Sequence record: OR513085.1
DNA: 64,000 nt
Reading direction: 5' to 3' (one strand)
In this document: positions 1 to 22,019 of the stretch, piece by piece
Layout: every line of letters starts with the position of its first letter
How positions within the stretch are numbered: the stretch's first letter is position 1
Notes under the pieces: model-generated
Told to the model about the DNA's origin: nothing
Databases searched by the model: none
Seen by the model: only the letters and a program-made list of their open reading frames with translations
Position numbers and translations under genes: made by a program

Positions 1-8
1 AGATAATT

Positions 9-998: not shown

Positions 999-1053
999 AC
1001 CTAATTTGCTTTAATAAATAATTCAATACAAAATATAAACACATTGTTCGTAA

Positions 1054-1134: not shown

Positions 1135-1152
1135 GAACTTTGATGCTTAAAT

Positions 1153-1160
1153 TATACATA
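1153..1160 (+). promoter_or_regulatory. T4-type late promoter (TATACATA)
   Basis: Variant of TATAAATA shortly upstream of ATG 1188; recurs before structural genes. Confidence 0.55.
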
Positions 1161-1187
1161 AACCAACAACATAATTTATATTTTACA

Positions 1188-2573: not shown

Positions 2574-2580
2574 ATAAAAT

Positions 2581-2604
2581 AAAGCCAGGCAATGCCTGGC
2601 TTTT
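2581..2604 (+). terminator. Intrinsic terminator
   Basis: AAAGCCAGGC-aat-GCCTGGCTTTT. Confidence 0.8.
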
Positions 2605-2675
2605 GCAGTTTGTGTGTATAATATAAACATAAATAACAACAACCGATCTTTAACATACTTGAACAATTTACTATC

Positions 2676-3083
2676 ATGGCTGATGAAACAAAGAAGCAGG
2701 ATGCTGTAACTACAGCGCCAAAGAAAAAACCAGGCAGAAAGCCTTACTTAACAAAAGAGGAATTAAAGGCAGAGTTGGCAGTGTCACATGAACGTGGACA
2801 GCTAACAAACAAAAATGCTAAAATGTTCCAGCTTATGGTTAGCAAAATTCAGTCAAGAGTTTTTTATAAAGACCCTGCAGCAAAAGAAGACTGTGCAGCG
2901 CATGCGATGTATATCGTAGCTAAAAATTGGCATAAGTTCGACATGACTCAGGACAATCCATTTGGATTCTTTACAACTACAATTATCAATGCATTATCTG
3001 CAGGATGGAATGCTAATGAACGTAGGCCAATTCACATACCATTGGATGCATTCATTAACAACGACGCAGATAAAGCTGAGTAG
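2676..3083 (+). CDS. gp55: T4 gp55-like late sigma factor
   Basis: YLTKEELKAEL...EDCAAHAMYIVAKNWHKFDMTQDNPFGFFTTTIINAL matches the gp55 pattern (FD...NPxxYxT...NAF). Confidence 0.75.
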   Translation: MADETKKQDAVTTAPKKKPGRKPYLTKEELKAELAVSHERGQLTNKNAKMFQLMVSKIQSRVFYKDPAAKEDCAAHAMYIVAKNWHKFDMTQDNPFGFFTTTIINALSAGWNANERRPIHIPLDAFINNDADKAE

Positions 3084-3133
3084 AACAATACTTGCCGGGT
3101 TACCGGATTTTTCATGATTTTTTTATTTTTTTG

Positions 3134-3167
3134 CACCCTGACTATCGCTTTTAGTCAGGGTGTTTTT
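3134..3167 (+). terminator. Intrinsic terminator
   Basis: CACCCTGACTA / TAGTCAGGGTG + T run. Confidence 0.8.
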
Positions 3168-3200
3168 GTTTGAAAGTTTTTGAAAAAAGTTGCCTAAAAA

Positions 3201-3232
3201 TTTTCATATGTCGTTTATTTTTCTTAAATTTA
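3201..3232 (+). promoter_or_regulatory. Early host-type promoter
   Basis: TTTTCATATGTCG with TTTTC 19 nt before TAAATTTA. Confidence 0.65.
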
Positions 3233-3271
3233 TACTATAATTAAAAACAATTAAAAAAAATCATTTAAGTT

Positions 3272-3466
3272 ATGAAAAATTCAGCAAAATACAAGAAAAA
3301 GCCAATTACTTTACTAGAATGGATTCATGATGACAATCATCCGCAAATTATGGTAACGTTAGCTAATGGTAACGACCAGATTTTAGAAGTTTCCGATTTT
3401 CTAGCAAACGGCGGAAAGTTTAAAGACTTGCAAAATGTAATTAACGAATACGAAGCAAACAAATAA
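3272..3466 (+). CDS. Hypothetical protein
   Basis: 64-aa ORF after early promoter. Confidence 0.6.
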   Translation: MKNSAKYKKKPITLLEWIHDDNHPQIMVTLANGNDQILEVSDFLANGGKFKDLQNVINEYEANK

Positions 3467-3475
3467 ATTAAAAAC

Positions 3476-3910
3476 ATGGCAACAATAAAAATTTTAGAAC
3501 AAAACGGTTACGATGTTTTATACAACCAGGAGACTGAAAAGTTTGAATCAAGCATTATTAAGCACAGACTGCTAGACGTAGTTAAGTCAGGAATTAAGCA
3601 TTATACATTACAAAAGAATTACTTGGATCAGCTTGACCGTGCTACGCTACTACTAAAGGAAAGCATAGCTATGCCGATACTTGGCGTGCATGATAATGAC
3701 TATATTTTTCTTTGGAATGTAGATCATATAACAGTAGTTCCTGCAGGCATGGCATCTAGGTTACGTAGAGTTATCGACCTCAATTCATATATAGAAGCAA
3801 AAGGCAGACTATGTAGACTGCTACAAGAACGTAAAGAACTTGACTTACGCATAGCAGAACTAGAATATGAATTGCCTTTAGCATTCCCGCAATTTAGCAA
3901 AGCAAAATAA
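3476..3910 (+). CDS. Hypothetical protein
   Basis: 144-aa ORF followed by terminator. Confidence 0.65.
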   Translation: MATIKILEQNGYDVLYNQETEKFESSIIKHRLLDVVKSGIKHYTLQKNYLDQLDRATLLLKESIAMPILGVHDNDYIFLWNVDHITVVPAGMASRLRRVIDLNSYIEAKGRLCRLLQERKELDLRIAELEYELPLAFPQFSKAK

Positions 3911-3939
3911 AATAAACCTTACTACCTGACATATTTTTT

Positions 3940-3974
3940 AAAAGCCTGGCGTTATGTAAACGCCAGGCTTTTTG
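3940..3974 (+). terminator. Intrinsic terminator
   Basis: AAAAGCCTGGCG / CGCCAGGCTTTTT. Confidence 0.8.
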
Positions 3975-4032
3975 TTGTTTAGCACAGCAATATGCTTTGC
4001 ATAAGAATACATACCTTATATAAGCTATAATT

Positions 4033-4701
4033 ATGTTTAACAATCCAAATAAAACGTCCTGGAAAGTGTTTTTGCCGCCTAACTTGCTGCCAAACACACT
4101 TAACGAGGACCTTTCGCAATACTTTTTTAATGAGGCTACGTTGCCATATCGTAACGTTCTTGAAGGTTGTTTTGAAGCTCAGATTACTGGCTATGAAATT
4201 CCGGAGCTAGGTATCGAAGCAGTTTCGCAAATGACGTATCCAGGAGGCCAAGTTACTCAGTTGCCTGCGTTATTTACACACGAGGCATATGGAGATAACC
4301 GAGTAGCTTTGACATTCAAATGCATGGATGGCTATTTCAATTACTTCCTGGCCAGGTATGCATTCCTAATTTACACCAATCCAAAGACTAACTCTGACAA
4401 AAACAAAACTGGTCAGATTGGCGACCTCATTATAACATTCAACACTCAAGGCTCACTTTTTCAGTACACTGTAGTTTATCGCCAAGTAGTTTGGGTATCT
4501 GTAGATGGCAAAAACTTTTCGTATGATGCTACACAAATGGACTTTGACACATTTGGAATGACTTTCCGCCACAATGGATTCGACATTATTCCAGGAATCA
4601 ACACAAGAATTGCAGAATCTAAAGGACTAAAAATTGAGGTTGGCGATGTAGATTATAGCAAGAAGGGCTTAGAGGAACTTAAACTACGAGAAAAGAAATA
4701 A
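4033..4701 (+). CDS. Putative tail tube/baseplate tube-initiator-like protein (gp19/gp54/gp48 fold)
   Basis: ITGYEIPELGIEAVSQ..., VALTFK, FDTFGMTF pattern; position before gp53-like gene; late box AATACATA 4006-13. Confidence 0.45.
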   Translation: MFNNPNKTSWKVFLPPNLLPNTLNEDLSQYFFNEATLPYRNVLEGCFEAQITGYEIPELGIEAVSQMTYPGGQVTQLPALFTHEAYGDNRVALTFKCMDGYFNYFLARYAFLIYTNPKTNSDKNKTGQIGDLIITFNTQGSLFQYTVVYRQVVWVSVDGKNFSYDATQMDFDTFGMTFRHNGFDIIPGINTRIAESKGLKIEVGDVDYSKKGLEELKLREKK

Positions 4702-4707
4702 GCGAAC

Positions 4708-5130
4708 ATGGCACTAACAGAACTACAATCATGTGAAAACTTGACTACTGATGGCAATGGTAACATTGTTTTCAACTCAAGTTTCCGAATGAATATTGAC
4801 GATATTAAAGTAGTCAATACATTTACAGTTGACGATATGACTGAACATAGAGCCCAGCTAATTTCGCAATCAATGTTTCAGACACAAAACTATGCAGACT
4901 TAATTTGCATATTCAACCAAATAAACAATCCTTTTTATATACCAAAGGGCACAATTCTAAAAGTTCCTGATTTAGCTCACATTCAAAGCAAAATGCTATT
5001 GTTTAGCCAACAAAACGTAGCGTTCGCAACAGAGAACGTTATACAAGAGAACGTACTAACTAAAAAAGCTAACAAAAGCTCTAACGTTCAACGTTCAGAA
5101 GGTAGACTAATTTTCAGGAAACAAAATTGA
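4708..5130 (+). CDS. gp53: Baseplate wedge gp53-like (LysM-like) protein
   Basis: RAQLISQSMFQTQNYADLICIFNQINNPFYIPKGTILKVP. Confidence 0.65.
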   Translation: MALTELQSCENLTTDGNGNIVFNSSFRMNIDDIKVVNTFTVDDMTEHRAQLISQSMFQTQNYADLICIFNQINNPFYIPKGTILKVPDLAHIQSKMLLFSQQNVAFATENVIQENVLTKKANKSSNVQRSEGRLIFRKQN

Positions 5131-5145
5131 CAATAAGCATAACAC

Positions 5146-7614
5146 ATGGCAACAATCAAAGAAATTTTAAAGCCTAACAACACGGCTAACGACATAGTCT
5201 TGCATGTTGGTGCTAACAAAACTACTACGCCAGAGAACGCATATTCAGACTTGCAATTTCAAGCAGGATTTTATTGGCCTATAGTAAAAGTTAGATCAAC
5301 TACATTCACTAAGCCAGCAATCAAAACGTTTGAGCTTAACTTCGGTTACCAACTATTACCAACGTTAGAGTTTATGGTTGTTGATGACTCTAGGTCGTTC
5401 CAACAATCAGACTATCCTGTTAAAAATGATGTAGTTACAGTATTCCTTGGCAACAACTACGATACCTCATCAAAGCCAATACAACTTGACTTTCTAATTG
5501 ATGACGTAACTACACTAAATAGCATGGATGGTTCCGGCTCGGCTAAGCATAGCTTTACCTGTACGTTAGCAATCGAGCATGCTTTTGAAAACATAAATTT
5601 TGCAGGAGAACAAACATCACTTAATGTTTTGTACGAACTTTGTAAAGCTATGAACTTGGGGTTAGTTACAAATTTGGATAGTACTAACGATCGCTACAAA
5701 TATCGTCAATATAGCAAAACAAATATTGAATATTTGAAAGATGTTTGTTCCAAAGTTTATGTCGATGATGCTACAATTATTCATTACTACATTGACCAGT
5801 ACTTTAGACTTAACGTTATTGACATTAATGCAATACTTAGCGCACCAGCACCTAGATTGCCAGTACGTCGTGACGTTACGTTCTTCAAAACGTTAGCAAA
5901 TCCTGAGGAGCTAGTACTAAACAATGCTCAGTACAACCTAACTAATGTACAATTTAAGTTTGGTAGCTACACTACGTCTAGTAATGCATTTGAAACATAC
6001 AAGGAAGTTAAGCCTGTCGAATCTACTGTAATTAACAAAGATTATTCGCAAGCTATTGTTAAAAGTACAGTAAAAGATACGCGAGTTAAGGCTAACGCTA
6101 CAACCGGAGGAGCTACAAAAAGTGAGAACGTTACAGAAAATAACGTAACAAATAGCAAACGTATACAAACAATTGCTATTGATGGCGAACACAACAGTAA
6201 CGTACAGCAATTAGGTAGCAATGCAAACAAAAGTAGGTTTAGATACTTAACAAACAACTCTATAACGCTAAGGCTTAACAATCCTAGCAACTTACTAAAC
6301 ATTAACCAAATGGTACCTGTTGAGTTGTACAAGCCAGATCAGTTTTCACAAACACCGCTAAAAAATTCAGATACTAACCTAGATAGCACACAACGGCCAA
6401 TAACGCCAGATGGTACAGAAGCCATTAATCCAACGTTATCAGGTGACTATGCAATAACAGGAATGACTTTTGCATATCGTCAAAATCAAAACCTTTGGCA
6501 GGAATTGAAGTTGATTCGTAGAGAATGGAAGCCTCAGCATTATGACGTTGACAAATCTCGTAAAATTGACTTATCAGAAGCTACATTCGGTGCGCCTAAG
6601 CCTTATACTTACCCACCACCGCCACCGCCACCTGCAGTAGACAACTCAGGCTATGGCGGGCAATATGGAGGATCATTAGGCAACTGGATGCAAATTGCTA
6701 GAGGTGAGCTAGGAACTGCGGAAGTTGCAGGTGCCGGTTCAAACCCAAGAATTGACGAATATCACCGAGTTGGAGGAGGACTTTCAGGAGGGCAGGCTAA
6801 CGATGCTACTGCATGGTGCGGTTCGTTTGTAGGCTGGTGTATGGTCAAGGCAGGCTACCCTAAACCTAACGGCTCGGCTGCAGCAATATCATGGGCTAAC
6901 TATGGAATACCTTGTGCTCCAGGTACAGTCGGCGCAATAATTGTGTTGAAGCTTAAGCCTAGTAGCATGACTTATTCAGGTAACCACGTAGGATTTTGTG
7001 CAGGCTTGAATGGTGATAAAGTTTCAATTTTAGGAGGTAACCAAGGCAACAGCGTTAGTCAGCTTAACATGGCTTCTGCAAAAGTTATTGCATGGAGGCT
7101 GCCACCCGGCTCACCTAGCCAAGGCATAGCTAACGCAGGCAATAGCGTAGCACCTACAGGACCTTTAAGAATTTCTAACCAAGGTGTTGAATTTATCAAA
7201 TCTAAGGAAGGTTGTAAGCTTACAGCATATTGGGATAGCTATGGTAAAGTATGGACCGTAGGTTACGGAAATACTAAACAAGCTAAGCCTGGCATGACAA
7301 TTACGTACCAACAGGCTGAGCAACTTTTACGTCAAGACATAGTTTACTTTGAAAACTACATAAATCAAAATGTAAAAGTTAAGCTAACGCAGGCTATGTT
7401 TGATGCTTTAGTATGTTTAACGTTCAACACTGGGCCAGGTAAAGTTTCACCTAGCTCAGCCATTGGAATAGCTTTGAAAAATCGGCAATACCAAACTGCA
7501 GCAGATACATTCCTACGTTACAACACATCAAAAGGTAAGTACTTGCAAGGCTTAGCTACTAGAAGGCAACAAGAACGCCAAATGTTTATGAGTCAAGGCG
7601 TAAATCCAATTTAA
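5146..7614 (+). CDS. Baseplate hub (gp27-like) fused to CHAP-like (TIGR02594-type) and GH24 lysozyme domains
   Basis: N-terminal hub-like region; poly-Pro linker; WMQIARGELG..AWCGSFV..GNHVGF; EGCKLTAYWDSYGKVWTVGYG (E-D-T triad). Confidence 0.75.
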   Translation: MATIKEILKPNNTANDIVLHVGANKTTTPENAYSDLQFQAGFYWPIVKVRSTTFTKPAIKTFELNFGYQLLPTLEFMVVDDSRSFQQSDYPVKNDVVTVFLGNNYDTSSKPIQLDFLIDDVTTLNSMDGSGSAKHSFTCTLAIEHAFENINFAGEQTSLNVLYELCKAMNLGLVTNLDSTNDRYKYRQYSKTNIEYLKDVCSKVYVDDATIIHYYIDQYFRLNVIDINAILSAPAPRLPVRRDVTFFKTLANPEELVLNNAQYNLTNVQFKFGSYTTSSNAFETYKEVKPVESTVINKDYSQAIVKSTVKDTRVKANATTGGATKSENVTENNVTNSKRIQTIAIDGEHNSNVQQLGSNANKSRFRYLTNNSITLRLNNPSNLLNINQMVPVELYKPDQFSQTPLKNSDTNLDSTQRPITPDGTEAINPTLSGDYAITGMTFAYRQNQNLWQELKLIRREWKPQHYDVDKSRKIDLSEATFGAPKPYTYPPPPPPPAVDNSGYGGQYGGSLGNWMQIARGELGTAEVAGAGSNPRIDEYHRVGGGLSGGQANDATAWCGSFVGWCMVKAGYPKPNGSAAAISWANYGIPCAPGTVGAIIVLKLKPSSMTYSGNHVGFCAGLNGDKVSILGGNQGNSVSQLNMASAKVIAWRLPPGSPSQGIANAGNSVAPTGPLRISNQGVEFIKSKEGCKLTAYWDSYGKVWTVGYGNTKQAKPGMTITYQQAEQLLRQDIVYFENYINQNVKVKLTQAMFDALVCLTFNTGPGKVSPSSAIGIALKNRQYQTAADTFLRYNTSKGKYLQGLATRRQQERQMFMSQGVNPI

Positions 7615-8357: not shown

Positions 8358-9164
8358 ATGAAAAACTTTTTCAGCTTTATCAACGAAGCAAATTCATTCA
8401 ATACAGACAACGGAAATCCTTTTAATGCAGGTGACATAGTTTATACAAAATCTGGTCGAATTAAAGGGGTAATTGCATCAGATTACGTAAGCAAATCATC
8501 TAACGGACTTTCAGTTTACGTCGACTACCTAGAACCTGGGTCATACAAAGGCGGCAAGAGTATGAAATTGCATTTAATTTCTGAACTTGTAGCATCTAGC
8601 GAAAAGAACATAGAAGGCAAAGAATTGGTGAAAAACTTCAAGCCTGGTGACTTAATAAAAATTAAAGCAACAGGAAATGTTGGCGAAATTATCGAACATG
8701 ACTTAGGCAAAAACAGAATTCAGTACAAAATTGTACAGGGCGAAAATATTACAAGACTAGATAATTTCGTTTCCGCATTTGGAATTGAACTTGTAGATGC
8801 TAAGAAAATGGCAGATGCTAAATTAGCCGAGCTTAAGGCTAACAAAGACCTTAACAAATTCTTTAAAATTTCAATGAACTGGGAATGCGAATTTACTTTG
8901 GAAAAGGCTGACGACAAAAAGCCAGGTAGGTTCTGGGTTAGAATTCAAACATTCGGAAAACGACTTTCTGAATATGAAGCTTACAAAACTGCAACTAACT
9001 TTGCGCCTCAGTCTAACAAAGAATATTCTGTTTCAGATTCGTATTACTTTGACACTAACGCATCTAAACCAACATCTTGGAAAGAACTTAAAGAAAAGTT
9101 TAGTGAAAGCGAATCAAATTCAGAAGTTTCTGGTAGAATTTACCGTTACTTAGACCTCAAATAA
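8358..9164 (+). CDS. Putative internal head protein with capsid-targeting leader and two KOW/SH3-like barrels
   Basis: MKNFFSFINE|A; FNAGDIVYTK..KGVI and FKPGDLIKIK..GEII repeats. Confidence 0.55.
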   Translation: MKNFFSFINEANSFNTDNGNPFNAGDIVYTKSGRIKGVIASDYVSKSSNGLSVYVDYLEPGSYKGGKSMKLHLISELVASSEKNIEGKELVKNFKPGDLIKIKATGNVGEIIEHDLGKNRIQYKIVQGENITRLDNFVSAFGIELVDAKKMADAKLAELKANKDLNKFFKISMNWECEFTLEKADDKKPGRFWVRIQTFGKRLSEYEAYKTATNFAPQSNKEYSVSDSYYFDTNASKPTSWKELKEKFSESESNSEVSGRIYRYLDLK

Positions 9165-9185
9165 CACATAAACAACAAAAGCTAC

Positions 9186-9220
9186 AAAAAGCCTGAACGT
9201 TCGTAACGTTCAGGCTTTTT
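9186..9220 (+). terminator. Intrinsic terminator
   Basis: AAAAAGCCTGAACG / CGTTCAGGCTTTTT. Confidence 0.8.
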
Positions 9221-9296
9221 GCGTTGTATGCAATATGCGTAGCATGCACAATTTAATTTAAATTGTGTACATATACTACACATTACAACTACAATT

Positions 9297-10055
9297 ATGC
9301 CTAGATTTAACACAAAATCAATATTTGCTTCGGCAACTAAATTTGCAAGAGGCATCCTTAGCTCAACACAAAAAATGTTTAATTCATCGGTTAAGGATGG
9401 CAATTATGACCTCAAAAAACGAATTGAGGAATCAGAATTTGTTAGAGATGATTCGTCCGCTAAGTCAGCTGCGCAAGATTGGCTACGTAAATACATGCAG
9501 AACAAAGACGTTCAGTTCAAGAAAAGACAAATGGAGGCAGGAAAGCTTTACTTTTTTCGCTATATGAAGCCTAAACACATGGACACTTTGGAATACTGGG
9601 ACCGAGGACCTCTAGTACTTTGCTTAGGCGGATATTGGTCGGCGGAAAATCAATACATTGAAGTTGGCTTAAACCTACACTTACTACCACCAAAAATTAG
9701 GCAGCAAGTACTAATTAAAGTATTTGACATGTTCAGACAACGTTATCGTGGCGAAATGTACGCGCCTACGCAACGTCCGCTAGAACTTAATTGGCAGGCT
9801 ATTGCTAGGCCTTTGCTACAATATGGAGCAGCTTTTGCATTTCGTAGCTACATACCACATCTACGTAGCCAAGCCATAGAGTTCAAATATGAAGACTGGG
9901 ATAAAGCAATATTTGTTCCTAACGAATATTTAAACAAAACTACGGCACTGGAATTGAGAAATATGTGGGCTGATTTTACTAGAAATCGTGCACTAAATCA
10001 ATTATCATCTAGCAACTTAGAAAACTTATTGTCTGGTAATGGTCAAAGAAGGTAG
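9297..10055 (+). CDS. gp2: DNA end protector protein (T4 gp2)
   Basis: GKLYFFRY..KH..TLEYWDRGPLV..GLNLHLLPPKIRQQ..RSY. Confidence 0.88.
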   Translation: MPRFNTKSIFASATKFARGILSSTQKMFNSSVKDGNYDLKKRIEESEFVRDDSSAKSAAQDWLRKYMQNKDVQFKKRQMEAGKLYFFRYMKPKHMDTLEYWDRGPLVLCLGGYWSAENQYIEVGLNLHLLPPKIRQQVLIKVFDMFRQRYRGEMYAPTQRPLELNWQAIARPLLQYGAAFAFRSYIPHLRSQAIEFKYEDWDKAIFVPNEYLNKTTALELRNMWADFTRNRALNQLSSSNLENLLSGNGQRR

Positions 10056-10368: not shown

Positions 10369-12078
10369 ATGGCAGTAGAAAATTTTAACAACAACATAAA
10401 CGTTACTAAGCAGAACGACTTGATGCGTAAACGTATCTTCAAGGAGATGCAGAACAACACAACAAAGTCTGTTATTAACAAAATTTACAACTCTATTCAA
10501 GGTAACCAAACCACCATGGACAACATCGTCAATGAAGACGCCGTATCTCCTGGCAACTTGGCAGGCAAAGCTACACAAACAGTTTTCAATACTAAAGTAG
10601 CTTCTGTAGCCGATTGTATTGGTGCTGCCTCTGAAATGGAAATTGCAGATATCCTAGATCGTTTTGTCGATGAAATGATTGTTTACGGAACTGGCAACAA
10701 CAGATTCTGTGAACCTGACTATTCGTCAATTGAGCAATTGGATATTACTGACAATGCTAAGCAGGAACTAAAAGACGAAATTGACAAAGCGTTTTCAAGA
10801 GTTTATAGATTGCTTAAGTACTCACGTCATAACATTCGTAGCGTTGAGGACGTTTCTGCATTAGCAAAACGTTGGCTAACTATTGGTAAGCTAGCATACT
10901 TTATTGTCTATGACAACTTAGAAAAGCCTACAAAAATTCTAGACATTATCCCAATTGACTTACGTAGATACACGCTAATTAAGCATGATATCCCAGTTAA
11001 AGTTAATAATGGGAAATATACATCGACTAAGACAGTTACTTATTGGACACTTCACGAAAACACTGGTAACGACCAGTACGGAAGAACAATGTATAACTCG
11101 GCAATGACTAACTTTACTTACTCGTTAGATAACGCACAGTTCCAAAAAGACATTTTTACTGACATGGAAATTACTATGGCAGACTGGTCTAGAGTAGAAT
11201 TTGAACTATCTAACGTACAGTCATATACTGCCATGCTACTTAGACCTTTCAACATTCTACGTATCATGGAACGTACAAAAATAATCTGGGCTGTAATGAA
11301 CTCACGTTACAGAACAATGTATAAAATTCCTGTTGCTAACTTAGGTAAGCAAAGAGGTAAGCAGGTTATTTCAATGGTAATGAACGACTACAAGGAAAAT
11401 GTAGAATTCAATTCGACTACCGGACAAATTTCAGTCAACGGACAGCCGGACTTACCTTTTAACAAGGACATTTGGATGGGCCGAGGTAATGCAGGTGAAC
11501 CTGAAATTATACCACTTGGCGGTAATGGTCCTGATATGTCAGACACTTCTACATTAACTCCGTTCTACCAAAAGTTACAAAAAGCGTCTAAAATGCCAAT
11601 GTCTAGATTCGAGGAAAACAATGCAGTTTACTGGGATATTAACCCAATGGCAATTTCTCTTGAAGAACGTAGATTTGGTAAATACAACGAAAAAGTTCAG
11701 CAACAATTTATCGAACCTCTACGTAAATGTACGTACTACCAGCTACTTATAGCTAATCCAAAATATATTGGCGACACTAACATTTATGATGCTCTTAACA
11801 TTCGTTGCAACAGATACAATGAACTTGAGCAAATGATGGAACTTGAAACTTTGAACAAGAAAATCGAACTTATCGGAGATGTTAAAGACAAAATGAAAAT
11901 TTACGATAAGGATGGCAACGAAGTTCCACTTATATCTACTAGATTGCTACTTGACAAATACTTACCGCTTACTAAGGCAGAAAAAGAACTTAACGAGAAG
12001 TACATCAAGGAAGAGCAGGAGAATATTAAGAAGGCTATACAAAATCAAACATATTCTGGTGAAAACCAAGGTTATTAG
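10369..12078 (+). CDS. gp20: Portal protein (T4 gp20)
   Basis: ILDRFVDEMIV, LRIMERTKIIW..RTMYKIPVANL, FNSTTGQI, DIWMGR, LQKASKMPMSRF, ISLEERRFGK. Confidence 0.92.
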   Translation: MAVENFNNNINVTKQNDLMRKRIFKEMQNNTTKSVINKIYNSIQGNQTTMDNIVNEDAVSPGNLAGKATQTVFNTKVASVADCIGAASEMEIADILDRFVDEMIVYGTGNNRFCEPDYSSIEQLDITDNAKQELKDEIDKAFSRVYRLLKYSRHNIRSVEDVSALAKRWLTIGKLAYFIVYDNLEKPTKILDIIPIDLRRYTLIKHDIPVKVNNGKYTSTKTVTYWTLHENTGNDQYGRTMYNSAMTNFTYSLDNAQFQKDIFTDMEITMADWSRVEFELSNVQSYTAMLLRPFNILRIMERTKIIWAVMNSRYRTMYKIPVANLGKQRGKQVISMVMNDYKENVEFNSTTGQISVNGQPDLPFNKDIWMGRGNAGEPEIIPLGGNGPDMSDTSTLTPFYQKLQKASKMPMSRFEENNAVYWDINPMAISLEERRFGKYNEKVQQQFIEPLRKCTYYQLLIANPKYIGDTNIYDALNIRCNRYNELEQMMELETLNKKIELIGDVKDKMKIYDKDGNEVPLISTRLLLDKYLPLTKAEKELNEKYIKEEQENIKKAIQNQTYSGENQGY

Positions 12079-12147: not shown

Positions 12148-12396
12148 ATGAAAACATTTACATACTTTATTAATGAAGCTAAACGAAACGAAAATTTACG
12201 TAATGACATTTATGCTAAATTGACTGCAGGCTCATCTAAAGTACCGCTGACAGTTATACAAAGATTAACTGCAATGATACAAAATAAAAAAGTATCGTTG
12301 ACTGCAATTTTATCATTTGCTGAAAGTTTCATAAAAGACAAAGACTTACTTAATGAAATTGTTAGCATGCTAAATTCAAATTTCGTTAATGAATAA
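12148..12396 (+). CDS. Small prohead core/internal protein (position of T4 gp67/68)
   Basis: MKTFTYFINE|A leader; lies between portal and protease. Confidence 0.55.
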   Translation: MKTFTYFINEAKRNENLRNDIYAKLTAGSSKVPLTVIQRLTAMIQNKKVSLTAILSFAESFIKDKDLLNEIVSMLNSNFVNE

Positions 12397-12409: not shown

Positions 12410-12417
12410 TATACATA
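12410..12417 (+). promoter_or_regulatory. Late promoter TATACATA
   Basis: Shortly upstream of the protease ATG. Confidence 0.6.
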
Positions 12418-12439
12418 CTAAAACCTACAATATTATTTT

Positions 12440-15400
12440 ATGAACAACACACAGAACTTAGGTTTTCTTGTAGAAAATCATGTTTCGCACAACGTCTTCC
12501 AAAGAATTGACGAATCTGTTGCGTTACCAGATGGAGTTCTGATGCTTATGCGAGGTACGTTTATTCCTATGGACGTTCCTGGCGAGAATGGCAGATGGTA
12601 CACTTACGCTGACTATGCACCGCAGGTAGAAATGTTACTACCTAAAATTGCTAGGAAAGAATGTTTTGGAGAAATTGAACATCCTCAAAGAGTTCACGTT
12701 CCTTACGACTTAGCGTCTCACAGAGTTGAGGAAGTTTACTACGACAAAGCATCAAATTCTTGGATTGGTACTATCGCAATTTTAGATACTGACAAAGGTA
12801 GAGCAGTTTACGATATCGCAAAAACTGGAGCTCCTATATACGTTTCGCATAGAGCGTTAGGTTCAGTTGACCAAAAGACTGGCAAAGGAATTCTACTTAA
12901 ATTGCTTACTTGGGACGTAACTTCCAATCCATCGTTTAAGGCTGCAGAATTTAGCAGAGCCGAACTTATCAATGAATCCGCTTACGTTTACTTGCCGCTA
13001 GAAGACGAAATGCTTAACGAATGCTATGCTGAGCTTGGCTTAACGTCAGAAGACTTCATCAACGAATCTACTGTTACTCTAACTCAAAGCGAATTGTTAG
13101 CTATGCTTAATGAAGCGTCTAACAATGCTAACGCTATAGCTACCGAACGTTACGCAAAGCTTTTAGCTAACGCAATTAATGTAAATGCCAATTTTGTTAA
13201 TGAACATATTGCAATTCAGCCATCACAAGTTATCGACGTCGTTAAGAAAATTAAAGAACGTCCTTGGATGACTGCCCAGGAAATGCTTGACCCGGAATTC
13301 AAATTTAACGACGAATATATGCATCCGCTAGATTTAGTTGCTGCAATGCAAGCTCTGGCTTCAGAAGGCATGCTATACGACGAAGATGCTCCTGGTTTTG
13401 ATGAAAACGAACCTCAAATAGCATCAGTTATTGCAGTACCTCAATTAGAAGAAGTAATTGCTAATTGGCAAATGGAGCAAGATGCTTTAGCTGCGGATGT
13501 TATTGCTGCCGAAGAAGCCAAAGCTGCTAAGTTTTCAAATGAATCTGTAGACTTCGTAAATAATTTTGCATCTGAATATGCTTTTGTAGGTCCTTATGAA
13601 GCTACAAAACAAGCAGTAGCTGCATTAACTGGCAAAGCTATTGGTGATCTTTCTGAATCTGTTGAAGCTAGAATTTCCGACATAATGGTTAACGCTAAAC
13701 CTGGTAATGCTGAGGAAATTATAAATGCTTTAGTTGACGCTGAACTATATGTTAGTGAAGCTTTAGAAGCAGCTAGCAATCCTAATAAGAACAAAGAAAT
13801 GCTACAAATTTTAGTTAACTTTACAAAATATGTTGAACTAAAATTACATGTATTCCACCACAATACTAAAAGCTACGCACAACATAAAGCATTCGATACA
13901 GCATACAAAAGCTTCCAAAAGCTAACTGATAGCATAATTGAACAAGCTATGGGATATAGCGGCGAACGCTATGATACTATAGACCTTTCAGTTTCTATGC
14001 CAATTGTATATGCTGACGATTCTGGAGCTGATGTTATAGAATCACTTTATTCGTTGTCAAAAGTTATTAAGCTAATTTCTGAGGATTTGATTGCCGGAGG
14101 ACTTTCTACGTTATCTGACGATGTTTCAGGAATTGGTGCGCAACTTTCGTACTTAATGACATTAAACGAATCTCAGCTAGATGAATTTGCTAATGAAGGT
14201 GTTTCTAGCTGGCTTAAAGATAAGTGGTCTAGGCTTAAACGTTGGGCCAACTCAAACATAGATGCTACTGTAACTATTGATGGAGTAGACTATATTATTG
14301 ATGACATTCAGGAAGACGACAAAGTAATTTGCAGAGATTCCGATGGCAAAGCCAAAGAATTTACCTTTGACGAGGTTTATAAATACTTAAACGAAAACAA
14401 CATATTACAACCACAAACAATGGCAAATACACACATTAACGAGGGCGTTGACGGAGCAAAAGCAAACGTTCTAGCTATTCTTTCCGGAGCAAAATTTGTA
14501 AGCTCGGTAGATAATGCAACAGATTATGACTATTCAATTGACGACGACGGACTTACTGCAGCTTCTGATGAAGTGGCATTAGATATCCTAGCCGTTCTTA
14601 AAAATAACGCAGTTACTGCTTCTGTAGATGGAGCTAAAGTAGCTATAACTTTCGGAATTGTTCCTGCAGTAGTTACTGACCAAATTAACGAATCTTTAGA
14701 AGACTTCTGTAACAAAATGCTTAGCTATGCTAACGAATCAGGTAATGCAGGAAACATTATTAACGCAGCAATGGCTATTCAAAATGCTAATGGCGTTATA
14801 AACATTAACGAATCTTACGTTACGTATTGCGAACAAATTGTAGAATATGCTAACGAATCAGGAGTAGCTTCTGACATTGCTAACGCTGGATCGCTATTAC
14901 AAAATGCTTTAGAAGCAAAATTTGCTAATGAGGCCGAAGAAACTGCAGCAATCGTATCTGATGCTACAATTGCCGGAGATGTTGCTGTAGATGGAGGTAA
15001 TGAAAGATATGCAGTAGGATGCGTATTCTCAGTAGATTCTCAAAACTTCACAGTTGCTGAATTTGACGGAACTAACGTAGTAACTACTACTGGTGAAACT
15101 TTCACTGTAGCTGAACTAAAGAAAGACGATGACGCACCAATTCCTGGAACTGATGATGCATTAGAACCTGGTGCTCCTGTAGAAGGCGACAATACTGTTG
15201 ATATGACTGTAACTCCTGTAGGAACTATCGGTTCAATCAACGAATCTTATAGCAAAACTAACAAGCCAAAAATTGGTGATAAAGTTACTTTCATCATGGA
15301 TAACCCAGACGGTCCTGGATTTGGTAAAGTTAAAAATGGTGAAAAAGTTACTGCTACTGTAGCTGATTTTGGTGACTGGGAAGGTGACGGTTATTCTCTT

Positions 15401-16063
15401 GACGTAGTACTTACTGGAGTTTCTGAGGAATACAACGTTTACACTACTGAACTTATCAATGAAGCTGCTGAGGACTTAACTGACTTACCTTCTGGAACTG
15501 CAGAGAACATTGACCATAAAGTTATCGAGGATGGCAATGCTACTGACATTCCTAGCAACCTCGACAAACCACTAGAAAACAAATTAGCTGAGGACTTCCT
15601 TGCTAGAGCTGATAAAGGCGTAACATTTGAACAATGGATTGTTGACCAAGCTTCTGCTAACGAATTAGTTACTCCTCAGTTAGTAATGACGGTTAAAACA
15701 ATTATTTCTGACATGGAAGTTAAGCAAATGATTAACGAATCTGCAGTACTAACCGCAGCATTTATTAACGAATCTGCAGAAGCTACTGAACAATCAGCTC
15801 ACTTAAAGCTTATTGGTGACCACATCGGACAATCTCACAAATACATGTTTGAACACTTGAACGAATCTGCAAAAGGAGTTCTAGTTGCTCAAGCTGAATT
15901 GTATAACTTGTCCAGCCAAAATATCCACGACTTCCTTGATACAAGAAACTGGGCACAAATCGCTAATACTACAATTAACGAATCAGTAGCTCAAATTTCT
16001 GCAAATATTCAACAAAATGACTGGAAATCTGCACTTAAAGCATCTTTCAGAGCAGGTAGATAG
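12440..16063 (+). CDS. gp21: Prohead protease (gp21 family) fused to a roughly 1030-aa acidic scaffold/cargo polyprotein
   Basis: GENGRWY, CFGEIEHP (His), VSHRALGS (Ser), WDVTSNPSF in the first 175 aa; about 20 xNE|S/A/G sites downstream. Confidence 0.88.
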   Translation: MNNTQNLGFLVENHVSHNVFQRIDESVALPDGVLMLMRGTFIPMDVPGENGRWYTYADYAPQVEMLLPKIARKECFGEIEHPQRVHVPYDLASHRVEEVYYDKASNSWIGTIAILDTDKGRAVYDIAKTGAPIYVSHRALGSVDQKTGKGILLKLLTWDVTSNPSFKAAEFSRAELINESAYVYLPLEDEMLNECYAELGLTSEDFINESTVTLTQSELLAMLNEASNNANAIATERYAKLLANAINVNANFVNEHIAIQPSQVIDVVKKIKERPWMTAQEMLDPEFKFNDEYMHPLDLVAAMQALASEGMLYDEDAPGFDENEPQIASVIAVPQLEEVIANWQMEQDALAADVIAAEEAKAAKFSNESVDFVNNFASEYAFVGPYEATKQAVAALTGKAIGDLSESVEARISDIMVNAKPGNAEEIINALVDAELYVSEALEAASNPNKNKEMLQILVNFTKYVELKLHVFHHNTKSYAQHKAFDTAYKSFQKLTDSIIEQAMGYSGERYDTIDLSVSMPIVYADDSGADVIESLYSLSKVIKLISEDLIAGGLSTLSDDVSGIGAQLSYLMTLNESQLDEFANEGVSSWLKDKWSRLKRWANSNIDATVTIDGVDYIIDDIQEDDKVICRDSDGKAKEFTFDEVYKYLNENNILQPQTMANTHINEGVDGAKANVLAILSGAKFVSSVDNATDYDYSIDDDGLTAASDEVALDILAVLKNNAVTASVDGAKVAITFGIVPAVVTDQINESLEDFCNKMLSYANESGNAGNIINAAMAIQNANGVININESYVTYCEQIVEYANESGVASDIANAGSLLQNALEAKFANEAEETAAIVSDATIAGDVAVDGGNERYAVGCVFSVDSQNFTVAEFDGTNVVTTTGETFTVAELKKDDDAPIPGTDDALEPGAPVEGDNTVDMTVTPVGTIGSINESYSKTNKPKIGDKVTFIMDNPDGPGFGKVKNGEKVTATVADFGDWEGDGYSLDVVLTGVSEEYNVYTTELINEAAEDLTDLPSGTAENIDHKVIEDGNATDIPSNLDKPLENKLAEDFLARADKGVTFEQWIVDQASANELVTPQLVMTVKTIISDMEVKQMINESAVLTAAFINESAEATEQSAHLKLIGDHIGQSHKYMFEHLNESAKGVLVAQAELYNLSSQNIHDFLDTRNWAQIANTTINESVAQISANIQQNDWKSALKASFRAGR

Positions 16064-16278: not shown

Positions 16279-18000
16279 ATGCAAACATTATTTCCAAACG
16301 CCAACCAAGTTGGCAACATGGTAGACAGATGGTCTGAATTTATTAACGAAGCAGCTCCTAAAGGTGGTAGTACTCTATCTGATGGTAAGAGAGCAATGAT
16401 CGCTCAGGTTGCAGAATTCCACGCTCATGGCAAGGATATCGCAACTGGAGGATTCTTGAACGAATCTATCATCGGTACAAATATTATGTCAAACGGTGCT
16501 AACATGAACGGAATGGGTTCTATTACTCTTCCTACTAACGTTAAAGCTGGATTTACCCAATTCAACCAACAAACTCCTGGTTCTGGTGATGTTCCTGTGA
16601 CTGTGCTTTCAATGGCAATGTCAGTAGCTGCGACTACTATCGGTTTTGATTTGTTACCAACTATTCCAATTTATCAGCCTGCAGTAATGCTACAGTACGT
16701 AGATTACCTTTACGGTGGTGGTAAACTTGATTCGGCAGATAACCCTCCTTTGATCGTTATGGCTAGAATTGAGGAACTTAGAGGACACCTTGATCTTAGA
16801 CAAGGTTCTAAAGTTGCTATCCACTCTGTTGCAGGTGATGCTACTTCTGGATGGACATTTGAGTTCGTTGGATTTACAAGATTAGAAGGATATGCAACTT
16901 TAAAGGTTGACACTTTCGCTAACAAAGTAACTCCTGCATTAGGTTCTCTTGCTTTAGTTGAATTTACTATTGACGGTGGTGCTCCTGTAACAGTTGCTCC
17001 TGCTGGAAATCCTAAATTGGAATTAGCTAGAGCGGTTGAAAACCACTTCTCAATGTTCACAGCTTACGGAAACCTTGATGGTGAAGGAGTTGATAGAGCT
17101 GAAGCTGAAAAAGGTACAAGATCAGTTATCGAAATGAGAACTTACTCTAAAGTAGTAAGAACTAAAGAACATGCTGTAGAAGGTATCGTTTCAAGACAAC
17201 AAGCTAGAGATATCAAAGCTATGGGTCTTGATGCATTCCCTCAATTGAAAGTTGCAATGCAGAATGACATCTCTCAGTCATTAAACAAGGAAATCCTTAT
17301 GAGAATGAGACAGATGGGTGTTTCTACACACTTAATGTTACAGAAATCTCAAGGAGTTAACTTGAACACTTACATTGACTTACCAGCTAACACTTCTAAG
17401 CCAATTGTACAGTTCAAAACTCAGCCTCTTATCGACAAGAACGGAGTTAACCAAACTGCTAACTTCTTACCAGCTCCTAACTCTGAAACTAACTCAGCTG
17501 CTGAAAACCTTTGGACTAGACAAAGAAGAGTAACTTCTACCATCATCACTGGTGCTGCTCTAGTAGGACAAGCTTCTTTCCACGGTTCTGCTGACGCTGT
17601 AGTTGTTAACTCTCAGTTAATGGCAGCTATTAAGGAATCTGTTGGTTACCAGCCAGCTACTATTGAGAACAAAATCTCTCAGTCTACAAAGGCTCTTTAT
17701 TATGCAGGTACTATTTCTGACGTTGCAGTTTACTGTGACCCTAACATGAAATGGAACGATACTACTGCTATCTTGGCTAGAACAGGTAAAACTGATGACG
17801 GTCTTGATATTAACCAATTAGCAGAAGGGTTAGTTTTTCTTCCGTATGTCTTGAGTTCGGAAGTTGAAATTATCACTGAAGGAACTATGGGTCCTAAAGC
17901 GTTAATCGAAACTGTTTATGCTATCGGAGAAATTGGTATCAGACCAGAACTTGCTTACTTAACTATCGTATTCGATAACGGATTTGGTAGATGGGCATAA
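16279..18000 (+). CDS. gp23: Major capsid protein (T4 gp23 family)
   Basis: PGSGD..VLSMAMSVAATTIGFDLLPTIP, VVVNSQL, YAGTI, EGLVFLPY, EGTMGPK; follows the protease; FLNE|S at residue 62. Confidence 0.92.
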   Translation: MQTLFPNANQVGNMVDRWSEFINEAAPKGGSTLSDGKRAMIAQVAEFHAHGKDIATGGFLNESIIGTNIMSNGANMNGMGSITLPTNVKAGFTQFNQQTPGSGDVPVTVLSMAMSVAATTIGFDLLPTIPIYQPAVMLQYVDYLYGGGKLDSADNPPLIVMARIEELRGHLDLRQGSKVAIHSVAGDATSGWTFEFVGFTRLEGYATLKVDTFANKVTPALGSLALVEFTIDGGAPVTVAPAGNPKLELARAVENHFSMFTAYGNLDGEGVDRAEAEKGTRSVIEMRTYSKVVRTKEHAVEGIVSRQQARDIKAMGLDAFPQLKVAMQNDISQSLNKEILMRMRQMGVSTHLMLQKSQGVNLNTYIDLPANTSKPIVQFKTQPLIDKNGVNQTANFLPAPNSETNSAAENLWTRQRRVTSTIITGAALVGQASFHGSADAVVVNSQLMAAIKESVGYQPATIENKISQSTKALYYAGTISDVAVYCDPNMKWNDTTAILARTGKTDDGLDINQLAEGLVFLPYVLSSEVEIITEGTMGPKALIETVYAIGEIGIRPELAYLTIVFDNGFGRWA

Positions 18001-19804: not shown

Positions 19805-20245
19805 ATGGCTATGAACAAACAAAACATACAGCGTGCAATAAACCATATTAGAACATTACGGCCTGAAAATTTTGATATGCAAGATTACCGTGCAGCCCAA
19901 TTTACTGACAAAGCTCCTGAATGCAAAACTATAGGATGCATAGTAGGCCATTGCACTATACTTGATGCCAAAAACATCAATGAAAAATTTATAGATATGC
20001 GTAACGATTCCATTATGTTCAACGAATGGTCAGTCGAATTCTTTGGCATTGGTATTTTGCAAAGAAGCTGGGACTATATGTTTTCATGTAATTGGGCTAA
20101 GTCACAAAAAACTAACACTATAGAACATGCAATTTATCGCATGGAACGTATAATTGACGATTATAAGCCAGGCAATATTGACGATGAATATTCATACGAA
20201 ACTGGCGCTACTAGGCTTGAACCTGGATATACTGACAACGACTAA
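19805..20245 (+). CDS. Hypothetical protein (Cys/His motif CKTIGCIVGHC)
   Basis: 146-aa ORF, tightly packed. Confidence 0.65.
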   Translation: MAMNKQNIQRAINHIRTLRPENFDMQDYRAAQFTDKAPECKTIGCIVGHCTILDAKNINEKFIDMRNDSIMFNEWSVEFFGIGILQRSWDYMFSCNWAKSQKTNTIEHAIYRMERIIDDYKPGNIDDEYSYETGATRLEPGYTDND

Positions 20246-20301
20246 CTTTTATGCACTACAGTGCAATCTATAAACATAATAACAAATAAATTTTTAAAAC
20301 A

Positions 20302-21219
20302 ATGACAAACATCAACGCGACCGAAAGACTCATTGCTATCTGGCAAAATGATTATGCTAGGCACACTAAAAACCACAAAACAGTCAACGAAGACGGCATT
20401 CTTAAAAAGTATTGGAAAAATCCAATTACACATTATTATGCTAATATTGGCACTGATGTACTTAGACAAATGCTAGAAGATTCAGAAGCTTATGACTATC
20501 CTGGCTTAGAATTTGCAGAACCTCAGCAAAATCCTAACAAAACTGCAATGCCTGAATACATAGGCAGTTATGCACTTTCAGAGGACCAGGTCATTCAATT
20601 TTATCATGACAAAGACCTCAAAAATGACATGCAGATGTACTATGCAGAAGAGGAATATGATTATCATCGACTACTTTTCGGAAGTCGTAGCAATCCTACA
20701 TTAGGCAAAGTATTCTCAAAAGTTTATTGTAACATCATTACAGATACGCCAATTTCAGACTTCCTTAGACTTCATATTTACCGAGTACTAAACAACCTGG
20801 ATAATGAAGGCACTAAATTCTACTTGCTACTTTCTGCAGCTGCAGCAAAACAACTAAAGCATGAGTCAGACTTTACTGAACAAATTTCAATGACTACAAT
20901 TAGCCAAATTAAACACAACACATCAAAATTTGGCACGTTCCGACCAAAATGGAAAAAGACTTCTAATTATGGCAGAGCATTCAGGAACATTTTAGAAAAT
21001 CATGCATGCATAGAATTGTACGAATGCCATGATTCAGGAGCTTCTATTAACCAGGAGCATAATTATCCTATGGCTGCTATACTTACTAGCTACAAAATGC
21101 ATGAACGTTTCGATAATTGTAGCATACATTCACCAATGCATCCTAACGATCATACGCCAACATCATTAAAGTCAGAACTAATTGAAAATATTTTGGACAA
21201 AGCTTTAAAAACTTGCTAA
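20302..21219 (+). CDS. Hypothetical protein
   Basis: 305-aa ORF. Confidence 0.7.
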   Translation: MTNINATERLIAIWQNDYARHTKNHKTVNEDGILKKYWKNPITHYYANIGTDVLRQMLEDSEAYDYPGLEFAEPQQNPNKTAMPEYIGSYALSEDQVIQFYHDKDLKNDMQMYYAEEEYDYHRLLFGSRSNPTLGKVFSKVYCNIITDTPISDFLRLHIYRVLNNLDNEGTKFYLLLSAAAAKQLKHESDFTEQISMTTISQIKHNTSKFGTFRPKWKKTSNYGRAFRNILENHACIELYECHDSGASINQEHNYPMAAILTSYKMHERFDNCSIHSPMHPNDHTPTSLKSELIENILDKALKTC

Positions 21220-21284: not shown

Positions 21285-22019
21285 ATGCAAAACAAACCAA
21301 TCTTAACAAGAGATCAAAAGCTAGCAATCCTAGGAGATAACCCACATAATTGGGACGTTGACAACTTGGAAATTGTACAGGACATTGCAATAACAAACGA
21401 ATTTGTAATGCAGGCTAACGAGGCAAACTACAAAACGTTGCTAGGCTTAGGCTGGACCAACCACTACACAATTCATTTGTTGGATAAAATCAACCTCAAC
21501 TATTACATAGACACTCCAGAAGTTTCAGGAAAACCTTCAAGCGACTTCAAAATTTCAATGAGGAATCACTTTGACCAGGATGTTGCCGAAGACTTAGGAA
21601 CTGTACCGAACTCAGAAGTAGGAACTGCATTTACAAACTTATGGACTAGGCAAAATGCTTTAGTTACACATTTGTTCAAAGCATCAAGCATTATGAATAC
21701 TATGTACGGCAATTTTGGTAAAACTATAATCGTAAATTCACAACTTGCTGCGGCTATTAAAAGTACAGAATTGTTCAAGCCTACACCTGTAGAGGAATTG
21801 GCTGAAACGTCATCAACTTCAATGCCATATGTTGCAGGTACGATTACTACCGAAGATGGCAAAATGTCACTAAAAGTCGTAGTTAATCCTCAGCAGCCAT
21901 GGGCAGATACTACTGCAGTATTGTATGACGGTGACTTTGACTTCCAAACAATTGAACTTGAGGAAGGCTTAACTTCAATTTCATTCGCATTCAATAACGG
22001 ATTAGGCCCATGGGCGTAG
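21285..22019 (+). CDS. Truncated paralog of the major capsid protein
   Basis: Shares NLWTRQ, VNSQLxAAIK, AGTI, WxDTTA and FxNGxGxWA* with 16279..18000. Confidence 0.75.
   Translation: MQNKPILTRDQKLAILGDNPHNWDVDNLEIVQDIAITNEFVMQANEANYKTLLGLGWTNHYTIHLLDKINLNYYIDTPEVSGKPSSDFKISMRNHFDQDVAEDLGTVPNSEVGTAFTNLWTRQNALVTHLFKASSIMNTMYGNFGKTIIVNSQLAAAIKSTELFKPTPVEELAETSSTSMPYVAGTITTEDGKMSLKVVVNPQQPWADTTAVLYDGDFDFQTIELEEGLTSISFAFNNGLGPWA

Follow-up and report, generated by a model that had tools for sequence, protein, structure and literature searches.

In T4, the prohead protease gp21 cleaves after L/I-X-E; propeptides are 7-65 residues long, internal proteins carry capsid targeting sequences of 10-19 residues, and gp22, gp67 and gp68 are cut into fragments (PMC9026906). 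The related enzyme of SPN3US, gp245, removes its own C-terminal propeptide and prefers Ser at P1' (PMC10052503), and the T4 scaffold had no confirmed counterpart in giant phages of the phiKZ/SPN3US type (PMC5694885). A different arrangement, in which protease and scaffold are made as one chain, is used by herpesviruses. There the precursor is cut once behind the protease, which releases the enzyme, and again some two dozen residues before the C-terminus, at a maturation site whose cleavage frees the scaffold from the shell. Fusion in herpesviruses is accompanied by nested transcripts (PMC11565193). Here we analyse gene MA9V2_209 of Chryseobacterium phage MA9V-2, described in its genome paper as a lytic myovirus. 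The window examined is 64,000 nucleotides (nt) long and corresponds to 154540..218539 of record OR513085.1, the last 64 kb of the 218.5-kb genome; MA9V2_209 spans 12440..16063 (+) of it as a single open reading frame (ORF) with an ATG start that encodes 1207 amino acids (aa), identical to the protein annotated as 'prohead core protein serine protease'. We propose that MA9V2_209 is a T4 gp21-type protease in fusion with an acidic head-core or scaffold protein, and that cleavage at a recurrent Asn-Glu motif takes the chain apart; we give this reading a probability of about 0.68. The chain as we describe it consists of a protease, a variable acidic middle and a conserved C-terminal domain, with 18 N-E-[S/A/G] sites. 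We infer that these sites are cut, that the MA9V2_209 protease cuts them, and what becomes of the fragments.

The initial annotation of the locus had placed a gp21-type protease in only about the first 175 aa, and this is borne out: the protease domain fills residues 1-179 (12440..12976, +). Pfam Peptidase_S77 (PF03420) matches residues 37-148 at 27.3 bits against a cut-off of 27, and PHROG 207, 'head maturation protease', matches residues 23-267 (E 5.5e-26). A search of the PDB with residues 1-205 as a single sequence gave no match; a profile built from 18 short homologues matches entry 5JBL, 'Prohead core protein protease' (E 3.2e-12). In the 18-sequence alignment S136 and D159 are invariant and H81 is present in at least 90% of the homologues. 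A His/Ser/Asp triad has been named for T4 gp21 (PMC5694885), and H81, S136 and D159 correspond to it. In 5JBL the residue aligned with D159 is Asp, and the deposited chain, which may be an inactivated crystallisation construct, has Ala at the His and Ser columns. The first strict copy of the motif follows E179, so that the enzyme fills only the first 15% of the chain, and a candidate N-terminal cut lies after E25 (I-D-E|S), where relatives have N-E|S. By these matches residues 1-179 are homologous to the T4 gp21-type protease, and the MA9V-2 enzyme is predicted to cleave at a Glu motif.

MA9V2_209 contains 24 N-E dipeptides, of which 18 are followed by S (13), A (3) or G (2). These sites end at E179, 209, 225, 368, 577, 586, 668, 751, 766, 791, 806, 831, 935, 1008, 1100, 1111, 1142 and 1181. 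The composition of the protein predicts 1.69 such sites (Poisson p ~4e-13), and the highest count among 2000 shuffles of the sequence was 7. The earlier description of about 20 near-identical NE|S/A sites is thus close to the mark, and every pentapeptide quoted for it (LINES, FINES and the rest) is found in the protein. Counting the motif protein by protein across the genome, as the initial annotation had proposed, was done on ORFs called piecewise (257 ORFs, 66,788 aa, ~98% of the MA9V-2 genome). Only three ORFs are enriched, namely MA9V2_209, an ORF of 1044 aa and one of 234 aa, and all the others together hold 48 copies, with 43.2 expected. This genome-wide control is decisive for the enrichment. 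The 2367-aa tail-fibre-like ORF (41418..48521), earlier offered as a protein free of the motif, does have 0 sites, which against 1.18 expected is not significant by itself.

The motif is also specific in its flanking positions. Over 45 sites, P4 is F, Y or M in 27 (17, 6 and 4, respectively), P3 is I, L, A or V in 40 (20, 8, 7 and 5) and P1' is S in 31, A in 12 and G in 2. When P3 is aliphatic, Asn alone is enriched at P2 (17 vs 0.66 expected), with Asp, Thr, Ser, Gln and the other residues tested near background. The Asn is encoded by both AAT and AAC and the P1' residue varies among S, A and G, which indicates selection at the level of the protein and rules out a DNA-level repeat as the source. 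That the motif is something other than a cleavage site (a glycosylation sequon, N-x-S, a structural repeat or the by-product of a DNA repeat) is very improbable. N-E-S does formally fit N-x-S/T, and Ser at P1' is always encoded by TCN codons. However, P1' is Ala or Gly in 14 of the 45 sites, which is impossible in a sequon and rules out N-glycosylation, and the Asn codons vary. The motif also ends leaders of 7-10 residues and lies in the capsid propeptide, as T4 protease sites do (PMC9026906); it is conserved at the protein level between chains whose protease domains are just 64-66% identical, and it bounds the insertions and deletions of modules described below.

Several other proteins of MA9V-2 carry the motif where a maturation protease would be expected to cut. 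The major capsid protein, a 573-aa member of the Gp23 family (16279..18000, +), has the previously noted F-L-N-E|S ending at residue 62 and a second site, F-I-N-E|A, ending at E24; its predicted propeptide is residues 1-62 (16279..16464). The E62 site is kept in a metagenomic relative (L008), in which the upstream site has Asp at P2. Leaders of 8-10 residues ending in N-E|S or N-E|A are present on eight small ORFs, four in the window and four elsewhere. Those in the window are all 10 residues long and belong to proteins of 268 aa (8358..9164, +; mature part basic), 82 aa (12148..12396, +), 99 aa (61862..62161, +) and 199 aa (63311..63910, +). The 82-aa protein, encoded between the portal and protease genes, has four N-E dipeptides in its 82 residues, and its C-terminus (...F-V-N-E) resembles an already cut product. 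A 433-aa protein (36599..37900, +) has a leader of 7 residues and a second site 12 residues further on, both within its first 19 residues. The mature parts of the leader-bearing proteins are basic in seven of nine cases (isoelectric point, pI, 7.8-9.5) and acidic in two. We also observed leaders ending in the motif on MA9V2_023, annotated as 'polymer-forming cytoskeletal protein', and on a 154-aa ORF that adjoins the terminase gene and has a second site 3 residues from its C-terminus (20104..20622 and 40608..41072 (-) of genome piece L005).

The 1044-aa ORF is MA9V2_236 (33231..36365, +), annotated as hypothetical, a second multi-site protein with 14 sites against 1.45 expected. Its counterpart in the isolate MA9V-1 has 889 aa and is thus 155 residues shorter, and at least one site-bounded segment of MA9V2_236, 87 residues long, has no match there. 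MA9V2_236 is mostly acidic and includes one basic coiled-coil piece. The third enriched protein has 234 aa (39107..39811, +) and 4 sites, with 0.42 expected. The ends of the leaders, the capsid sites at E24 and E62, and conservation in MA9V-1 and in divergent relatives support the earlier suggestion that NE| is the maturation site of this phage. On these grounds N-E|[S/A/G] behaves as the MA9V-2 maturation site and is most likely cleaved.

Close relatives of MA9V2_209 were found by a word-indexed search limited to long proteins. They comprise the 1347-aa orthologue of MA9V-1, a 1758-aa protein on a 162-kb metagenomic contig (P0003), three proteins of ~702 aa (P0005-P0007) and a 787-aa protein truncated by the end of its contig (P0004). 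Full-length relatives (~700-1758 aa) have 13-26 N-E-[SAG] sites, with 1.1-2.0 expected, and the two contig-truncated ones have 8-9 (for P0004, 9 vs 0.78 expected). The protease domains of relatives that keep the motif are, as mentioned, only 64-66% identical. Between MA9V-1 and MA9V-2 all 18 sites are kept, and none of the 54 N-E-P1' positions has changed, compared with 8.7% divergence elsewhere. The gene order of the P0003 contig matches that of MA9V-2. An assembly or annotation artefact is ruled out by the occurrence of the long ORF in two isolates and several metagenomic contigs.

These comparisons reveal what differs between the chains. MA9V-1 carries an insertion of 133 aa exactly at the site after residue 1008, which runs from site to site and consists of two modules (59 and 74 aa). 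MA9V2_209 and P0003 share collinear modules at residues 1-179, 256-368, 587-652, 669-751, 936-1008 and 1009-1100 by BLAST, and the C-terminal tail by hidden Markov model (HMM). Segments 369-577 and 832-935 occur in the MA9V phages alone, and P0003 in turn has numerous private modules. Judged from these alignments, the middle of the chain evolves by the gain, loss and duplication of whole site-bounded modules.

The fused form is not limited to close relatives. Residues 1-180, used as the query in an exhaustive HMMER search, matched 1701 proteins at E <= 0.001. Among the closest 155 of these, which were surveyed for length and architecture, 117 have 500-800 aa (500-750 aa in most of the 155), 7 exceed 1300 aa and only 21 have fewer than 400 aa; a protease with a long extension is therefore the usual form near MA9V2_209. 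The extensions of 117 clade members contain 1295 hydrophobic-x-E-[SAG] sites against 397 expected, and Asn occupies P2 in 27% of them (background frequency 8.7%). These data also bear on which enzyme would cut. We give almost no weight to cleavage by another protease, such as the phage's ClpP-like MA9V2_099 or a host enzyme: a ClpP-family gene is indeed annotated in the MA9V-2 genome, but S77 is the family with a known habit of cutting such motifs behind the Glu, the S77 domain itself is bordered by the motif, and over the 117 proteins the hydrophobic-x-E|small type of motif tracks the S77 clade.

One protease-extension protein of 1345 aa (P0017), with 38% identity in the protease domain, stands for 107 near-identical metagenome sequences from many samples, which suggests that the expanded form is abundant in some environment. 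The search covered phage records and metagenome proteins, and of the named isolates in it only MA9V-1 and MA9V-2 have the expanded form. Three arrangements can be distinguished: separate genes (Sphingomonas phage PAU), a fused gene (Tenacibaculum phage pT24) and a fused and expanded gene (the MA9V phages and several metagenomic lineages with different modules). The pT24 protein BPT24_140 resembles MA9V2_209 in having an S77 protease, an extension and the conserved C-terminal domain, but it has 527 aa, a plain charged extension and mixed hydrophobic-x-E|S sites, with the capsid gene directly next, whereas MA9V2_209 has 1207 aa, folded-looking modules and a strict Asn at P2. Proteins of the pT24/PHROG 207 group are labelled 'protease' or 'prohead core scaffold' and nothing else. 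A protease with an extension is thus common in the clade and not unique to MA9V-2. This clade-wide fused form, the second multi-site protein at 33231..36365 and the leader-bearing proteins were all absent from the initial annotation.

Several observations suggest that the extension includes a scaffold. Its last ~105 aa form a domain that a locally iterated HMM finds, always at the very end, in 116 of the 132 clade members with 450 aa or more. PHROG 207 includes this domain at its profile positions 410-519; Pfam and PHROG scans of the domain returned no named family apart from that end of PHROG 207, and no Pfam family. In phage PAU the protease is a separate 246-aa protein, followed by an annotated scaffold, internal capsid proteins with leaders of their own, an acidic coiled-coil protein and then the capsid gene. 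There the C-terminal-domain HMM matches an unannotated open stretch, 9058..9351 (+) of the analysed locus (L004), with E 3.5e-18, which sits between gp155 and the capsid gene gp156, beside the acidic coiled-coil protein. This stretch has no listed ORF of at least 60 aa with a start codon, and it may belong with gp155 in another frame or be an unannotated small gene. That the domain in PAU goes with the scaffold-like region and not with the protease is our main reason for calling the extension a scaffold. In MA9V-2, no scaffold gene of its own lies between the protease and capsid genes among the ORFs of the window. The domain, the PAU arrangement and this absence support the earlier suggestion that the protease gene doubles as the scaffold; that the extension includes a scaffold-type part is well supported by these comparisons, and scaffolding is its probable function.

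The positions of the outermost sites are conserved as well. Over 117 proteins, the first site after the protease domain falls at a median of residue 168 (E179 in MA9V-2) and the last site, in the median, comes 26 residues before the C-terminus (interquartile range 19-32; E1181 in MA9V-2). Net charge is positive for the terminal fragment in 90 of the 117 and negative for the remainder of the extension in 114. In MA9V2_209 all predicted fragments have a pI of 4.1-5.7 except the last 26 residues, the only basic piece (pI 11), and the net charge of the chain is roughly -110. This layout of enzyme, release site, acidic body, site and basic tip, which is also that of herpesvirus protease-scaffold precursors, points to a body that is a core to be cleared rather than cargo kept beside the DNA.

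We suggest the following sequence of events (residue numbers are those of MA9V2_209). The whole chain would be built into the prohead core, with the ~105-aa C-terminal domain and its basic tip contacting the shell or the core. Once active, the protease would cut after Glu in sites with an aromatic or hydrophobic P4, aliphatic P3, Asn at P2, Glu at P1 and Ser, Ala or Gly at P1'. The conserved cut at E179, just past the protease domain, would free the enzyme, and that at E1181, ~26 residues before the C-terminus, would detach the chain from its anchor. The other ~16 cuts would reduce the acidic middle to pieces of 9-209 residues, making room for DNA. Further predicted substrates of the enzyme are the capsid protein, which would lose residues 1-62, and the 1044-aa multi-site protein, which would be dismantled. 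About nine small and mostly basic proteins would lose their leaders of 7-10 residues; they are the likelier candidates for internal proteins that stay in the head.

What the middle of the chain contains can be described segment by segment. Residues 180-225 (12977..13114, +) are taken up by short acidic linker peptides; sites end at E209 and E225, and E194 belongs to an N-E|C. Residues 226-368 (13115..13543, +) include a helical module, 256-368, that is conserved and collinear in P0003, P0004 and a further relative, P0008; the position before it is N-E|S in relatives and N-E|H (E255) in MA9V-2. Residues 369-577 (13544..14170, +), a segment of the MA9V phages in which MA9V-1 has an extra site, contain DUF5856 at residues 473-572 (13856..14155, +; Pfam PF19174 and PHROG 858; 53.7 bits against a cut-off of 34.6, E 4.5e-14). 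Against the PDB this segment gave only weak Dps matches (E 0.18-1.4). In the weak alignment with one of them (1N1Q), two His, one Asp and one Glu coincide with identical Dps residues; if the alignment is true, these would be a ferritin-like metal site within a head-core protein. Residues 587-668 and 669-751 (14198..14692, +) are two small alpha/beta modules common to P0003 and P0004, and residues 752-831 (14693..14932, +) are a tandem duplication of a ~40-aa helical unit with two sites per copy. The next two segments (14933..15463, +) are residues 832-935, with a small beta part and a disordered acidic Pro-rich linker found only in the MA9V phages, and 936-1008, a small beta module that also occurs in P0003. 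Residues 1009-1100 (15464..15739, +) form a module kept in all close relatives, and residues 1101-1207 (15740..16063, +) hold the conserved C-terminal domain, which the HMM matches over ~1102-1205 and in which E1111, E1142 and E1181 end sites.

Structure prediction of the inter-site segments, which the initial annotation had suggested, gave a divided result, in that small alpha/beta and beta modules are indicated but at low confidence and with no significant fold match. AlphaFold2 modelled residues 1-1200 (7 sequences) at a mean predicted local distance difference test score (pLDDT) of 39.8, with the protease domain poor too, and residues 587-1008 (4 sequences) at a mean of 51.5. The better-modelled parts are the predicted small alpha/beta and beta modules at 587-652, 669-751 and 936-1008 and the helical hairpins at 752-831, with pLDDT up to ~80 in the best-modelled pair, 587-668 and 669-751. 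Of the eight strict sites in the 587-1008 model, six lie where pLDDT is <50, as it is for 39% of the residues modelled. Searched with Foldseek, neither the PDB nor BFVD yielded a match at E <= 0.001; there were at most faint hints of Tudor, PWWP or SH3-like structures. Pfam and PHROG scans of ten separate segments recognised DUF5856 alone. A phmmer comparison of 139 modules from 13 multi-site proteins found no credible match among the free-standing ORFs of MA9V-2 and a related contig, and no matches between lineages.

These segments could instead be cargo, that is, folded proteins freed in the head, kept with the DNA and possibly delivered to the host, in the manner of the internal proteins of T4 or of phiKZ-type ejection proteins. 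The initial annotation had taken this view and spoken of a string of cargo domains set free in the head. In its favour, seven segments have the size of domains, and for some of them small alpha/beta or beta modules are predicted; the DUF5856 segment exists as a free-standing protein in T4-like phages; modules are gained and lost between close relatives like accessory genes, and different lineages have unrelated sets; and T4 and SPN3US do retain some processed head proteins (PMC9026906, PMC10052503). Yet the fragments are strongly acidic apart from the last (~-110 per chain), while proteins with T4-like leaders are mostly basic; no module has a homologue among the free-standing ORFs of MA9V-2 or the related contig; no fold match is significant; only DUF5856 is a recognised domain; and retention is not readable from sequence. 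We found no direct support for cargo release, and the acidity of the fragments makes discarded scaffold the better fit. The cargo reading is possible but less likely, and weaker than the scaffold reading. A bolder version, which we regard as doubtful, is that the middle of the chain and the 1044-aa protein are an evolvable 'cargo bay', in which any module inserted between sites would be carried into every head and freed there, and strongly acidic folded modules, the Dps-like one among them, would remain with the DNA and pass into the host along with it. If this were true, the acidic modules could be, for example, DNA mimics or DNA-handling factors, and the phage would have a route of effector delivery distinct from its leader-tagged internal proteins.

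Returning to the protease-scaffold fusion, a number of points weigh against it. Cleavage is predicted from the sequence, the MA9V-1 paper offering only a sodium dodecyl sulfate gel and the MA9V-2 paper no proteomics. Several inter-site segments are domain-size (70-209 aa) and one is a recognised domain, DUF5856, which one would not expect of a scaffold that is thrown away, and pieces that are folded may have difficulty in leaving the shell. The Pfam S77 score is barely at the cut-off, the models are poor, and the placement of the sites in linkers is weakly supported by them. Finally, T4 has ~72 copies of gp21 and 576 of gp22 (PMC9026906), unlike the 1:1 ratio of protease to scaffold that a fusion imposes, so that the main scaffold could be another protein, for example the 1044-aa protein or a shorter product of MA9V2_209.

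The last possibility amounts to nested expression, in which most of the scaffold would be a shorter product from an internal in-frame start and the full-length fusion a minor one that brings the protease into the prohead, as in herpesviruses and lambda. It would solve the stoichiometry problem posed by the T4 copy numbers (PMC9026906) and is a conserved strategy in the Herpesvirales (PMC11565193). The regulatory signals that we found do not favour it. A candidate late-promoter element, the TATACATAC box (12410..12418, +), lies 30 nt upstream of the MA9V2_209 start, and closely similar boxes at window positions 4007, 33196, 36573 and 41384 precede the genes at 4033, 33231, 36599 and 41418. This box, (T/A)ATACATA(C/A), is 26-35 nt upstream of the five genes, four of which are structural or multi-site, and is a candidate late promoter; there is no copy inside the MA9V2_209 ORF, and in the window only one copy lies within any gene. 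Translation starts in Bacteroidota lack a clear signal. We consider nested expression unlikely, and it would in any case be compatible with the protease-scaffold fusion and not exclusive of it.

How MA9V-2 compares with the known systems can now be stated. It resembles T4 in its homologous protease (the profile match to 5JBL), in portal and capsid proteins of T4 families and, as read from its sequence, in Glu cleavage within a short motif with an aliphatic P3, a capsid propeptide of ~60 residues and leaders of ~10 residues; the cutting of core proteins into many pieces, known for T4 (PMC9026906), is predicted for MA9V-2. When the phage collection was searched with the capsid protein, T4-like coliphages were not among the matches. 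It differs in that T4 encodes its protease (~212 aa) and scaffold by separate genes, whereas MA9V-2 has one chain of 1207 aa; in that P2 is fixed as Asn and is free in T4; and in having a core part with domain-size modules that differ between close relatives, and a second multi-site protein of 1044 aa. With phiKZ gp175 and SPN3US gp245 it shares a diverged gp21 homologue, Ser at P1' and, as predicted for MA9V-2, self-trimming at the C-terminus and long regions cut at several sites (PMC10052503, PMC9026906). However, SPN3US gp245 loses 64 residues where MA9V2_209 would lose ~1030, the giant-phage motif is (S/A/G)-X-E or A-X-E rather than N-E, and the multi-cut regions of the giant phages are N-terminal propeptides of other proteins. 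The likeness to the herpesvirus precursor and to lambda C/Nu3 is one of architecture: an N-terminal protease is fused in frame to a scaffold, and the MA9V clade has conserved motif sites at both places of cutting. Herpesviruses and lambda make two or a few cuts, compared with ~20 predicted for MA9V2_209, have no cassette-like modules, and are known to express the scaffold separately.

The surroundings of the gene are those of a head module. A DNA-end protector (9297..10055) and a portal protein of the T4 gp20 family without any site (10369..12078, +) precede it, and the order portal, 82-aa ORF, MA9V2_209, capsid gene is a position as expected for S77 proteases. Elsewhere in the window, a 244-aa ORF (21285..22019) with 28% identity to capsid residues 325-527 is a paralogue or fragment of the capsid protein and has an A-N-E|A site after residue 46. 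Around the window start (1..5538 of genome piece L001; record 149314..155537), the adjacent ORFs MA9V2_192 and MA9V2_196, both annotated as DNA polymerase, are split by two hypothetical genes and the TnpB-family MA9V2_195. A second recurrent box, TTTTCA[TC]ATGTCG, lies 42-71 nt upstream of many small genes and is followed by an AT-rich box; it is probably a phage promoter class. Copies are at 3201, 19560, 23156, 54488 and 60414, and degenerate ones precede 18129, 21285, 23548, 27299, 27687 and 59479.

T4-type proteolytic head maturation, capsid targeting leaders, self-trimming of the protease and the principle of a protease-scaffold fusion are already known. Our literature search for a phage protease polyprotein or a C-terminal extension of a phage protease found no description of either. 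Within that literature, a gp21-family protease on a chain of 1200-1750 residues with ~20 sites is apparently undescribed, as are the fixed-Asn P2 motif, the clade-wide C-terminal domain and the cassette-like turnover of modules.

For MA9V-2 itself, the strict four-residue motif lets the processed head proteome be predicted, including the protease-scaffold chain, the multi-site protein, the capsid propeptide and about ten leader-bearing proteins, and since MA9V-1 and MA9V-2 are isolates the inference is directly checkable. The site-bounded insertions and deletions suggest that a head-core protein can grow or shrink with its processing intact. More broadly, the fused chain points to where the scaffold may be located in a large clade of Bacteroidota jumbo and mega phages, most of them uncultured and with relatives of the Lak phages among them.

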